A stretch of DNA of 64,000 nt from Paragordius varius (Eukaryota > Animalia > Nematomorpha), in the NCBI GenBank assembly GCA_964247055.1, contig OZ176052.1, positions 1,612,001-1,676,000 of the forward strand, written 5' to 3'. Position 1 is the first letter of the stretch. The number at the start of each line of letters is the position of its first letter. Both the position numbers and the translations under genes were made by a program. The notes beneath the pieces are model-generated. The model had not been told where the DNA came from and ran no database searches. It was given only the letters and a program-made list of their open reading frames with translations. This document shows, in pieces, positions 3,521-56,900 of the stretch.

Positions 3521-4366
3521 ATGAATTTAATTTCAATCGCAAAATCCAGGAGTTTTAATTTACCGATTTATTCCGCTTTCAAATATAGATGTTATTGTCA
3601 AAGCAAAGATAAATCTTCACCTAACCCAAATAAAGATACGAAACCATTTGAACGCGTTGAATCTCCGCGTGAATCAAAAGACACTGCATTCCAGTTTTTC
3701 ACTTGGAGACGGCTTGTTTATGGCTTAGGAGGAGGCCTCATCATAGTTGCTGCTTTACGATATCTCAAATCCATAAAAGATGAACAAGTAGAAGAAGAAA
3801 GAAGGAAACATATGGGGAAAATGTTGATTGGTGGTGATTGGACGCTTACGGATCAAAATGGAAAGACGGTAACTAACAAAGATTTTATGGGTAAGTGGAT
3901 ACTATTGTATTTTGGTTTCACCCATTGTCCCGACATCTGTCCAGACGAAATGGAAAAAATGTGTAAAGCCGTTGACATAATCGACGAAGAAAACAAGAAA
4001 AATGGCACAAACAACGCTATAGAAATTGTCCCAATTTTCGTATCGGTAGATCCTGAACGTGACACGCCTGCAATCATTAAAAAATATTGTGCGGAGTTTT
4101 CACCAAAAATGGTTGGGCTAACCGGGACACCCGATCAAATTCAACACATGTCTAAAACGTTTCGCGTCTATTTTAGTAAAGGACCAATTGATAAAACTTC
4201 CAAAGAATACATTGTTGACCATACAATTATTACATATTTGATAGATCCAAAAAGTGAATTTGTCGATTATTATGGGCGGACCAAGACGGCAGAAGACATT
4301 GCAAATGGAATCAAAATACAAACTCTGAAATACAACAAAGCAAATAAACGATTTAGTTTTTTGTGA
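3521..4366 (+). CDS. SCO1: Mitochondrial copper chaperone SCO1/SCO2 (cytochrome c oxidase assembly), single exon
   Basis: 281-aa ORF with a basic targeting-like N-terminus, one TM (LVYGLGGGLIIVAAL), the YFGFTHCPDICPDE CxxxC motif, VSVDPERDT, and the copper-ligand His in YIVDHTII. SCO1 cannot be distinguished from SCO2 by eye. Confidence 0.97.
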   Translation: MNLISIAKSRSFNLPIYSAFKYRCYCQSKDKSSPNPNKDTKPFERVESPRESKDTAFQFFTWRRLVYGLGGGLIIVAALRYLKSIKDEQVEEERRKHMGKMLIGGDWTLTDQNGKTVTNKDFMGKWILLYFGFTHCPDICPDEMEKMCKAVDIIDEENKKNGTNNAIEIVPIFVSVDPERDTPAIIKKYCAEFSPKMVGLTGTPDQIQHMSKTFRVYFSKGPIDKTSKEYIVDHTIITYLIDPKSEFVDYYGRTKTAEDIANGIKIQTLKYNKANKRFSFL

Positions 4367-53077: not shown

Positions 53078-53595
53078 CTGACAACAAAAAACTGGCAACT
53101 TTCGTTAACTCATATGGCATAATTCGTTTTATGAATCTTTAGATTCGTTTATGCAAAAAAACTAAACATTTTACTTGCCTAAGTTTTTCCCTACTAACGA
53201 TTTAATAAACCCAAAATGGCTGTTTACACATTTTAGCTTAAAGATATTACAGAACTAGTAAAAACTTTAACGTTGCCTAAAAAGTAATTGCTAGGCAAAA
53301 ACCGGATAACAAAATAATTATTTATTCCTTCAAACAAAATTTATATTTTAAAATTGAAATTAAATCACTAAATTGAATTGTGAGGACTTATCTTTGTTTC
53401 AATAAGTTTTTATATGATTTAGATATTATCCCTAAAAAACTTTTTACCAATTTTCAACTATTTATTATAAAAACATAATAATTTTACTGCTAATTACTAT
53501 AAGGACTAGGTTAATGGTAAAACATTTTAGAATGCAACAATCAAATAGGTTATACTTTTATTGAAATTTTTTATTTATATCAACATCGTACATTA

Positions 53596-55077
53596 ATGAA
53601 AAATATTTTTGCTAATTGGATTCGAAAGAACGATTATAAAGAAAGAAGAGTTATTGGACAAGGTTATTTATTATGTTTTAAACCCCAAATTTTTATAAGA
53701 TATTCCATAATTTAAAATATAAAATTTATCAATTTTAACGGACATGATGATGTTTTTAAATAAAATCCTTTAGACAAGTTGAATGTAAAATTAGTTAGTT
53801 ATTTTCTTTTTTAGCGTAAAATCAACATATATAATTGGTCTAAATTTATTGTGTTTAAGAAGAGAAGTTTTTAAAACAAACTAGTCTAAGGTTTATACTA
53901 ACGTCATAGGCTACTGTAATTGATTTTCGGTCTATGGAAAGTTTTTTAAATAAAATATAATTATTAATTTGTAGATTTGAAGAAGTGGTGGCATCGTGTA
54001 TTCGCTTGTTTTGGAAAAGCGGAAGAGAAGGACGCTTTGATTGGTAAGTAAATTAGTATTTTGCTTGAACCATATTAAAGTTTATATTTTTCAAGGGCAA
54101 GAGCCAAGAGATAACTAAAATTTTAAATGGTGATGATTTTTGATGAAACTTACATTTGATTTTAATATTTATGTGTACATAATATCACTATCATTAATCG
54201 AAATAAAAGTATGTTACTCTCGGCTTGAAGATCCTTATTTAGCTATATAGATTAATTTTTTAAAAATAAATTAATATGGTAATTTTTATTATAAAACCAA
54301 TTTTTCTGTGCATAAATTAGTTGTTTGTCCGCCTGGTAAGCCTGATGCGTTTCAAAAGAAATCCAACATCAAGGGCCGACACGGATTCAAAAATGGTATT
54401 TATTTAATAAAATATATTTTGTTTAAACTTATAGCGATAAAAAATGTAATCTAGATACTATTTGAGCCCATTTAAATAAGTATCAACATCAAATAACGTA
54501 AATATTTTATTAGAACCAAATATCCCAAAAAGAGTGGTTTTCAATGAAGACGTTGAATATTTCCGTTGGACCCCGACTTCCCCTGTCGGAGAACTGTTCT
54601 ATCCAGAACCTAGTTGGGCAGAAATAAATGTGATAGAAAGCGATAATTCCTTCGATGAAGATTGTACTTCGCCTGAATCAATCGGTAAAATAAATATTTC
54701 GAAACATTTTTACAACACTGAGATAAATGCAAAAAGCAATTATCATAAAATAATATCTTAATCGATAATGTTACAAATTTATTTAATTGTGTGTAGAAAA
54801 AACTGTTCCGAAAAAAACAGTAAGATTCAATGACAAACCACAGTATTTTACAAGGACCCCTTCACCTTGTGAGGAACCATTTCCAGAATCAGGCTTACCA
54901 GGAATAGATTTGGTGGAATGCAAGGGTTGTACATGCGATTATGAATCTGTGATGACTGATTGTGTTATTCGAGAAACATACAGTAAGTTTTAAATAACAC
55001 TTTTACATTAACAATATAATTAAATTTTTTTTATTTTTTGATGTTTAGGGGTCTTTTATTTGGAGACCCGTGTATGA
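53596..55077 (+). CDS. Orphan 198-aa protein; predicted PP1-interacting protein (two RVxF motifs) with C-terminal ETRV
   Basis: Exons 53596-53662 (least certain), 53975-54043, 54321-54395, 54514-54684, 54797-54982 and 55049-55077, all junctions phase 1, total 597 nt with no internal stop: MKNIFANWIRKNDYKERRVIGQ|DLKKWWHRVFACFGKAEEKDALI|VVCPPGKPDAFQKKSNIKGRHGFKN|EPNIPKRVVFNEDVEYFRWTPTSP...ESI|EKTVPKKTVRFNDKPQYFTRTPSP...RETY|RVFYLETRV*. Exons are GC-rich against AT-rich introns. Confidence 0.75.
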
Positions 55078-55089
55078 CGTTGGCTGGAA

Positions 55090-56900
55090 TGAATCTAAAA
55101 CTATCAATCACACACTATATACATATTTTATATATTATCCATTTTTATATATAATATATTCTATTTTTACATTCCATATATTCATATTTTTTTCTTCTTC
55201 TTATTCTACGAAATACATTCCTTTACATCAAACCTCAACTCAACTTACCTTACACATACACACCCACACACATCACATGTCCTATTTACTTTTTGGACAT
55301 CATACTATTTTATATTTTACCCATCCTTACATTGCATCAACATACATATCTTCCATTCTCTATCCTTACAAATTCACCCAAGATTTATTTTCATCATACT
55401 ACACTCACCTTACATACAAACATCACCTATATTCTATCTATTTTTGGATGCTAACTTTTATTCTGTATTTAAATTATTTTTTTATTTTATTAAAAATATA
55501 TTCCCTTATTTTAATCCTTACAAAATCACTTAACATTAATCATCACACCTCTCTACCTTATATAAACATCTTCAAACTCACCATTCATCACATATTCTAG
55601 TTTTTGGATACTTTTTTATATTTTATTTGATATATATCCTCTTGAATTACATCAACATACATCTCTTTCCACCATCCCACCTCATCTTACTTACCTTACA
55701 TACAACAAACTCATCTCATCTATCCATCATTTTTTGGATACTATATTTTTATTTTTATACCATAAATAGAATTATTTTTTATTTTGATTAAATTTTATTC
55801 CTATATTACCTTATATATTACATCAACACATGTTATACGAAATCCCTCTCATCACACTCTCACCTTACAACTCATTCCCACATATCACATCACCTCTCTC
55901 CAATATGCATTGTTTCACCATATCTTTATATTGAATTAATATTTTTTAATTTTACATACCTATCTTAACAAATTCACCTACCATTTACCATTACATCGCA
56001 CCTCACCTACATCATCAAAAATCTCATTTTTGGATACTTTTTATTATATATTAATATATTTTTACTTTATATTCCTCATTTAATATTCCCATATTCCCTT
56101 GCTTTACAACCCTATCTTTACAAAATCACCTCACCTCACATATACATCATCAAACTCATCAAATCTCATTTTTGGATACTTTCGAACATATATGATATAT
56201 TTTTATTTTATATTCCCATATCCTTACGATATACCAAACATTTATCATCACACCTCACCTTACAATTACATCCTCAAACTTATATCAAATCTCATTTTTG
56301 GACACTTTTTACCATATATGAATATATTTTTACTTCAAATCTTATCCTTACGATATACCTAACATCTATCATCACACCTCATCTTACAATTACATCCTCA
56401 AACTTATATCAAATCTCATTTTTGGATGCTTTTTATTATATATGAATATATTTCTTTATATTCCCATATCCTTACAATATACCTATTTATCATCACACCT
56501 TACATATACATCATCAAACTCATCAAATCTCATTAAATACTTTTTATTATATATGAATATATTTTTACTTCAAATTCCCATATTCCCTTACATTACATCC
56601 CTATCTTTACAAAACCTCTATCATTTACCGCATTAAACATCACCTTACATCTCACACACTCATTACATCATCACCTCTCCTATTTACTTTTTTAGCATTT
56701 TCATTTTTTATATTTGATATTTTTTATTTTATTAAATTATATTCCCATATTCTCTTACATTACATCAACACATCTTTAAACTCACTCTTCCTACCTACAA
56801 AACTCCTAACATTCATCATCACACCTCACCTTACATATACATTGTCAAACTCAACACATCTCTGATTTTTATTTTCACACAACTTACATTAACGAACCCT
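55090..56900. repeat. Strand-asymmetric, nearly G-free tandem array (~120-160 bp units)
   Basis: Anchor ttttgga(t/c)(a/g)ct at ~55290, 55441, 55601, 55731, 56027, 56169, 56295 and 56419. Each unit is a T/A block plus a C/A block (catcacacctcaccttaca). G is almost confined to the anchor. Confidence 0.9.

Follow-up and report, generated by a model that had tools for sequence, protein, structure and literature searches.

Most partners of protein phosphatase 1 (PP1) are defined by docking motifs. The RVxF motif, for which the published definition is (K/R)(K/R)(V/I){FIMYDP}(F/W) (PMC6363451), occurs in GADD34 as KVRF at residues 555-558 and is followed there by the hydrophobic PhiPhi pair Val564-His565, hence at an offset of +6/+7 from F558 (PMC10743859). 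In PNUTS the pair is extended to PhiPhi-x-F, the last Phe of which fills a pocket that is also used by GM, RepoMan/Ki-67 and RRP1B (PMC11536154, PMC10731240), and CDK1 sites located within the docking region of RepoMan block PP1 binding when they are phosphorylated (PMC5005033). Here we consider a gene of the horsehair worm Paragordius varius which encodes a similar arrangement of motifs. It lies on the + strand at positions 53596-55077 of a stretch of 64,000 nucleotides (assembly GCA_964247055.1, contig OZ176052.1, positions 1,612,001-1,676,000), referred to below as the window, and it consists of six exons, with an RVxF-like module in exon 4 and a second in exon 5.

The gene is one intact copy in a family that appears to be confined to hairworms and that encodes small proteins, probably disordered for the most part. 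A preliminary description of the window had proposed an orphan PP1-targeting scaffold carrying two RVxF modules, a membrane-anchor-like segment and a class I PDZ ligand. The observation was confirmed and the interpretation is partly supported: to judge from the sequence, PP1 docking is plausible, and the function that we favour for the family member, tentatively, is that of a PP1-interacting protein, with binding predicted from the motif.

Gene model and paralogues

Direct reading of the sequence, together with exon-by-exon translation, yielded a gene with a coding length of 597 nt, corresponding to 198 codons and a TGA stop, in which all introns are GT-AG and phase 1 and the internal exons 2 to 5 measure 69, 75, 171 and 186 nt, respectively. 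The codons split at the five junctions were read by eye as D, V, E, E and R. Both the exon sizes and the phase-1 symmetry that had been described earlier were confirmed, and all the peptides then quoted were found, namely the basic-aromatic-Cys stretch of exon 2, KRVVF...YFRW-TPTSP of exon 4, KTVRF...YFTR-TPSP of exon 5 and ETRV before the stop.

Exon 1 (53596-53662) opens with the ATG and extends over 22 codons and one base to the donor AAG|GT; it encodes a basic N-terminus with no signal-peptide-like hydrophobic stretch. Exon 2 (53975-54043) carries the basic-aromatic stretch with an invariant Cys, and exon 3 (54321-54395) encodes a basic linker rich in Pro and Gly. Module 1 is followed by an acidic tail in exon 4 (54514-54684), and module 2, in exon 5 (54797-54982), by a Cys-containing tail in which S-G-x-P...E-C...T-C...E-T-Y, with five Cys residues (54916-54963), is conserved. 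The last nine codons, with E-T-R-V at 55063-55074 and the TGA stop, constitute exon 6 (55049-55077). The minus strand contains no open reading frame (ORF) of at least 60 amino acids between 51.3 and 57.7 kb, and an Rfam search of the whole window, which is very AT-rich (21-34% G+C), produced no match.

Evidence that the gene is real arose from comparison within the genome, where all homology searches, as elsewhere in this work, employed individual exon peptides or profiles. The exon-4 and exon-5 peptides each matched 12 loci in the worm's own 110.6-Mb assembly, distributed over three contigs, with eight on contig C3 (1.61-1.94 Mb, both strands), two on C4 (11.13-11.14 Mb) and two on C5 (7.40-7.42 Mb). 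The window contains one of the C3 copies and its neighbours are located 1.5 kb before the window start and 3.6 kb past the window end. tblastn searches with the six exon peptides revealed the same exon order in the paralogue copies. When the eight C3 copies were aligned, seven had an intact ATG start, TGA stop and full set of ten splice sites, including the ATG and donor of exon 1, with copy L006 lacking exons 1-2, and the acceptor and stop of exon 6 were present in all eight. Exons in the 5' half of the gene are 79-93% identical between the C3 copies while the introns are 65-70% identical; exon 3 shows 92.5% nucleotide identity and the introns on either side of it about 70%.

Ratios of non-synonymous to synonymous substitution rates (dN/dS), calculated by the Nei-Gojobori method over exons 3-5 summed, ranged from 0.16 to 0.82 for pairs of copies, with pooled values of 0.30, 0.30 and 0.47 for exons 3, 4 and 5, respectively. 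Invariant residues of module 1 vary in their codons, with Pro specified by CCA, CCT or CCC, Arg by AGA or AGG, Val by GTG or GTC, Phe by TTC or TTT, Ser by TCC or TCA and Gly by GGA, GGG or GGT, and synonymous differences occur at seven positions. Moreover, the exon structure, frame, motifs and stop are also found in the C4 and C5 copies, which are distant (40-62% identity), and the exon-1 peptide is 65% identical to that of the distant C5 copy L012. Given the paralogues, the retained splice sites, the dN/dS values and the synonymous variation, we consider it very probable that the six-exon gene is real.

The exon-4 profile also detected a second cluster of about seven genes on C4 at 3.38-3.46 Mb (L043-L050) which have only the 22-residue module in common with the others. 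It is encoded on a short exon as P-K-K-S-V-T-F-S-E-V-N-Q-Y-H-S-W-T-P-V-S-P-V, and an exon lying just upstream, at the corresponding place, carries W-R-R-Y-L-C-C...C-C, recalling the exon-2 motif. One gene, L050, appears to be frame-shifted. Acidic repeat exons were seen downstream of the module in this cluster. With the 12 paralogues, the family totals about 19 genes, and the earlier term orphan is thus apt insofar as no family was recognised outside it (Pfam, PDB and HMMER), but not in the sense of a single gene.

Docking modules and terminal motifs

Translation places the parts of module 1 at 54528-54542 (KRVVF), 54558-54569 (YFRW) and 54570-54584 (TPTSP) and those of module 2 at 54814-54828 (KTVRF), 54844-54855 (YFTR) and 54856-54867 (TPSP). 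K-R-V-V-F of exon 4 conforms to the RVxF definition given above, and K-T-V-R-F of exon 5 was also counted as a fit; Thr at the second position of the motif is permitted by wider published variants. The Tyr-Phe pair of module 1 lies at +6/+7, counted from the motif Phe, and is followed, after one residue, by Trp, which is the form of the PNUTS PhiPhi-x-F motif, with T-P and S-P occurring directly after. The likeness of this pair to the phi-phi motif, proposed earlier, was borne out by its spacing, which is that of solved PP1 regulators (PMC6363451, PMC10743859). The proline-directed sites beside the module are also present, and for their suggested role as a switch RepoMan provides a precedent by analogy.

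Conservation of module 1 is strict. Its RVxF motif is retained in all 12 paralogues, and in the exon-4 alignment P-K-R-V-x-F-N, the second Phe of the pair, P-x-S-P-x-G and P-x-P are invariant throughout (12 of 12), while the acidic second half of the exon varies freely. The second cluster also keeps the module, in each of the five copies picked up by a scan of seven loci. In an alignment of 13 modules chosen to represent exon 4, exon 5 and the second cluster, four positions were invariant, namely the Pro at the start, both Val and Phe of RVxF and Pro of T-P; the Lys and the first aromatic residue were nearly so, and all 13 carried an aromatic pair, Y/F followed by F/H. By analogy, the invariant positions of the module are the PP1 contact positions of solved regulators.

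Module 2 is less constrained. Its RVxF motif is retained in 10 of the 12 paralogues and has been lost from both C5 copies. In the window copy there are two private changes, from the family Trp to Arg and from a Glu to Lys, and paralogue L002 has Ser at the Trp position. Thus, of the two RVxF modules described earlier, the first is canonical and invariant, whereas the second, to judge from these substitutions, is a weaker duplicate which is partly degenerate in the window copy. Second-cluster genes carry one module only.

That exons 4 and 5 had arisen by duplication was also proposed in the preliminary description, and their relatedness exceeds chance in both peptide and profile searches. In the whole-genome search the exon-4 query matched exon 5 of the C4 paralogues with E values of 1.5e-5 and 2.6e-5, and with the exon-4 profile the E values for copies of exon 5 ranged from 6.5e-8 to 0.02; the likeness spans the whole exon in the C4 genes. 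From their sequences, therefore, exons 4 and 5 are duplicates. In-frame skipping of these symmetric exons is an arithmetical possibility only.

In the mechanism that we propose, K-R-V-x-F of exon 4 would lie in strand form along the RVxF groove of the PP1 catalytic subunit (PP1c), Tyr-Phe, six and seven residues on, would enter the adjacent PhiPhi pocket and Trp, two residues further, would occupy the 'Phe-motif' pocket used by PNUTS. Proline-directed phosphorylation at T-P and S-P, directly after, could then weaken docking in a RepoMan-like manner, and the N-terminal Trp-Arg-hydrophobic-Cys stretch and the conserved Val-ending tail probably place the complex at a membrane or scaffold. We infer PP1 binding, phospho-switching at T-P/S-P and localisation by analogy with the regulators cited above.

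Potential partners are encoded in the same genome, where four PP1c loci scored above the STPPase_N cut-off and one matches human PP1 alpha almost perfectly across 110 residues. The canonical gene (L052:1537-1896, + strand; G000:C1:5.00 Mb) carries eight extra codons, I-Q-S-N-N-F-L-G, relative to human PP1 alpha, and these are probably a 24-nt micro-intron. Another PP1-type gene is intronless (L055:709-1797, - strand; G000:C2:8.88 Mb) and encodes 363 amino acids (E 1e-149), of which about 45 form an N-terminal extension; this gene might have arisen as a retrocopy or might serve a particular tissue, like the PP1 of nematode sperm.

The exon-2 motif, K-W-x-x-R-hydrophobic-hydrophobic-x-C-F-G, with residues at 53977-54015, is present in C3, C4 and C5 copies. 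It includes one invariant Cys and has a helical hydrophobic moment of about 0.6, a mean hydrophobicity of about 0.2 and no hydrophobic span. The Trp-Arg-hydrophobic-Cys motif in the segment earlier described as membrane-anchor-like is conserved, but the segment is not hydrophobic and is at most an amphipathic stretch, for which S-acylation of the Cys would be a fair guess at most.

At the C-terminus, E-T-R-V followed by TGA conforms to the class I PDZ rule, x-(S/T)-x-hydrophobic. This ending occurs in 10 of the 12 paralogues, comprising the C3 copies and the C5 copies (as Y-W-E-T-R-V), while the C4 pair ends in Y-W-E-I-D-V, with Ile at -2. All 12 keep the tail Y-x-E-x-x-V; the window copy has the motif of the earlier PDZ-ligand claim and the whole family its terminal Val, but the -2 Thr of the class I rule is not a family constant. 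A function of the tail in PDZ binding can be suggested from its sequence.

Distribution, flanking sequence and alternative explanations

Searches for relatives were made in a range of libraries. Pfam yielded no match for any exon or for the 12 exon-4 sequences, and neither did word searches in which the profiles of exons 4 and 5 were run against 5.8 billion proteins, and which reach only proteins of about 31-107 amino acids, an IMG/VR scan or a PDB sequence search with a 21-position module profile. The exon-4 profile gave PDB sequence matches to a HIT-family protein (E 0.008) and to a tail-spike protein which we attribute to chance. Scanning 1.84 billion representatives with HMMER, using the same profile, produced 28 matches with E values from 1e-3 to 1.6e-6, and these were rejected as spurious because they consist of 4-10 repeats of F-N-P-R-S-P-C-G-E-R, resembling the P-x-S-P-x-G part, in repeat-derived ORFs.

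Another gene of the window helps to set the limits of the family. The single-exon SCO1/SenC gene at 3521-4363 of the window (+ strand; Pfam E 1.6e-47) has as its best match a protein of the horsehair worm Gordionus sp. (62% identity, E 1e-109), with the next best at 2e-86, which fits a nematomorph genome from a genus other than Gordionus. The Gordionus proteome is therefore in the collection behind the libraries and yet no family member was found there, so that the family is restricted to part of the Nematomorpha as far as the libraries were searched, with the caveat that small genes can be missed by annotation.

Sequence immediately before the gene is also conserved. About 90 nt preceding the ATG (53510-53595, + strand) are kept in seven of the eight aligned C3 copies and include a conserved, splice-acceptor-like TTTTAG|AATGCAACAATC (also written TTTTAG|AATGCAACAATCAAATA), followed by an upstream ATG frame of 6-10 codons. 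Farther upstream, the C3 copies align poorly, with an identity of 0.69 and 30% gaps. The block could be a 5' untranslated region (UTR) or core promoter, and the acceptor could belong to a 5' UTR intron or to trans-splicing, with a short upstream ORF as a further possibility.

Just after the stop begins a G-poor, C-rich tract (55090-56800, + strand) with 1-4% G and 21-30% C which holds a 124-nt tandem repeat at 56127-56583. A like tract follows the stop in the seven C3 copies, including that of the window, and the one C4 copy that were measured (besides the window, L002-L007 and L009); it is 87-91% identical between C3 copies and is probably a 3' UTR travelling with the gene. From exon 4 through the tract (54514-55977), introns included, the C3 copies are 87-94% identical, whereas the 5' half (53596-54513) has diverged. 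This greater likeness of the 3' half suggests that gene conversion has occurred, seeded by the downstream array.

Several results weigh against PP1 docking. The bare RVxF motif occurred in 47% of shuffles of the protein's own residues, and two such motifs in 12%, compared with 1.8% for the extended form (RVxF, 5-8 residues, hydrophobic pair, x, F/W), and since the bare motif is so common the weight of the PP1 reading lies on conservation and not on the presence of the motif. AlphaFold2 assigned a mean pLDDT (predicted local distance difference test score) of 51 to exon 5, which was unstructured, and of 62 to exon 4, where it predicted a weak three-strand sheet at residues 5-28, with values of 68-78 over residues 1-30; if that sheet does form, the module might be a small fold and not a linear motif. 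Neither Pfam, PDB sequence searches nor Foldseek revealed a tie to solved PP1 regulators. In the ESM-Atlas the three nearest named clusters for both exons carry PF10488 (PP1c_bdg), at scores of 0.80-0.83, but one third of shuffled proteins reach this range and the two exons are not independent. Furthermore, since several copies have a decayed module 2 and genes of the second cluster carry a single module, two-site binding and the 'tunable valency' suggested earlier are not properties of the family.

It is thus quite possible, although we consider it doubtful, that the family is real and its module is no PP1 dock, being instead a small beta unit or a dock for another partner, such as a proline-directed kinase, a WW/Pin1-type reader of pT-P/pS-P or a family-specific protein, with the RVxF likeness coincidental. 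The frequency of such strings in shuffles, the predicted strands and the missing link in sequence or fold to known PP1 regulators would all fit, and the invariant residues extend past the PP1 motifs to P-x-S-P-x-G and P-x-P. On the other hand, the invariant positions match PP1 contacts (V, F, the pair at +6/+7 and the next aromatic) in three dissimilar groups of genes, and the fold model is of low confidence and has no structural neighbour, the best Foldseek match in the PDB, a WW domain at E 3.3, having been rejected. Much less probable is that a repeated unit of gene and G-poor array carries the copies along as passengers which are decaying or without function, their open frames kept only by recent duplication and gene conversion. 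Homogenisation of the 3' half in C3, introns 4 and 5 and the array included, the truncation of L006, the apparent frame-shift of L050 and the lack of a transcript-derived family protein in the library of 1.84 billion could be so explained; nevertheless, where the introns have diverged to about 70% the exons show dN/dS well below 1, invariant residues vary synonymously in their codons, and the exons, frame, motifs and stop persist in the distant C4 and C5 copies.

The Atlas clusters, together with the PhiPhi spacing shared with GADD34 (PMC10743859), might also point to a very diverged adaptor of the PPP1R15/GADD34 type (PP1c_bdg), which would supply the targeting subunit of the eIF2-alpha phosphatase, so far not found in nematodes. 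Such an assignment gains from the failure of PF10488 to match anywhere in the worm's own genome and from the lack of a known GADD34/CReP homologue in C. elegans (PMC10743859), but we consider it very unlikely because hmmscan found no PF10488 match to the exons or to the 12 exon-4 sequences up to E 10, the Atlas scores are at chance level for a first match, nothing resembling the Arg/Ala-rich helical part downstream in the PPP1R15 core was seen and 19 copies would be odd for a housekeeping adaptor. Some viral proteins copy PP1-dock and PDZ-tail motifs of their hosts, and parasite effectors that mimic host short linear motifs in this way, acting in the insect host, might be expected in a lineage-restricted family that has expanded in a host-manipulating parasite group and encodes a disordered protein with two host-type motifs. 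This is the most improbable of the explanations, given that the N-terminus has no signal-peptide-like stretch, that secretion and expression are conjectural and that the worm's own PP1c genes are a simpler target. A broader proposal, of a hairworm-specific motif-mimic family combining PP1 dock, PDZ-type tail and a G-free 3' UTR of about 1.7 kb, whose members are host effectors or the missing eIF2-alpha adaptors of the nematode-hairworm lineage, is likewise very hard to credit.

If PP1 binding, the reading that we favour, were true, the family would constitute a lineage-born set of PP1 regulators from a parasitic phylum that has been little studied, a set in which an adaptor arose from little beyond a docking string, duplication of a symmetric exon and amplification to about 19 copies. 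The 22-residue module, with its invariant contact positions, provides a clean test case in combination with PP1c from the worm itself. The result is a prediction at the level of motifs for an orphan gene; it helps hairworm genome annotation and will not surprise a PP1 specialist, since PP1 partners are mostly defined in this way. The window itself adds one intact copy of the family with a slightly degenerate second module.

Comparison with known PP1 systems

Some docking systems were considered and set aside. The Inhibitor-1/DARPP-32 type was dropped because the basic R-R-R-P-T-P site is lacking and T-P lies only 10 residues from RVxF, and no exact match was found to the calcineurin PxIxIT and LxVP motifs or to the MAPK docking motif F-x-F-P. 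The small viral PP1c_bdg proteins (PF10488; ICP34.5/DP71L) are alike in being short proteins built around one RVxF-PhiPhi dock but, in the absence of a PF10488 hidden Markov model match or an IMG/VR relative, they constitute a language-model lead only. With class I PDZ C-termini (x-S/T-x-V-COOH) the likeness extends to the 10 copies ending in E-T-R-V and not to the C4 pair with Ile at -2.

RepoMan and Ki-67 share with the module an RVxF motif, x-E-D-hydrophobic, an aromatic residue at +9 and S/T-P sites within the dock (PMC5005033). Their PhiPhi pair is located at +7/+8, however, compared with +6/+7 in the hairworm module, and the KiR-SLiM consensus FDxxLP(P/A)N(T/S)PL(R/K)(R/K)Gx(T/S)P is absent, the module reading R-W-T-P-T-S-P-V-G-E-L after the aromatic pair (PMC5005033).

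The RVxF-PhiPhi class, to which PNUTS, spinophilin/neurabin, PPP1R15A/B and Phactr1 belong, differs in that no sequence homology was found in the Pfam and PDB searches and the hairworm gene lacks both the spaced Arg motif and, at the distance published for it, a clear W motif. The hairworm protein is also far smaller, has no folded substrate-recruiting domain and is encoded in about 19 copies. Nevertheless, members of this class have the same layout of RVxF, five residues and a hydrophobic pair, which in the module is aromatic and is followed by a further aromatic as in PhiPhi-x-F of PNUTS (PMC10743859, PMC11536154, PMC7599070), and the motif may, as in that class, lie in a disordered region, to judge from the low-confidence exon-4 model.

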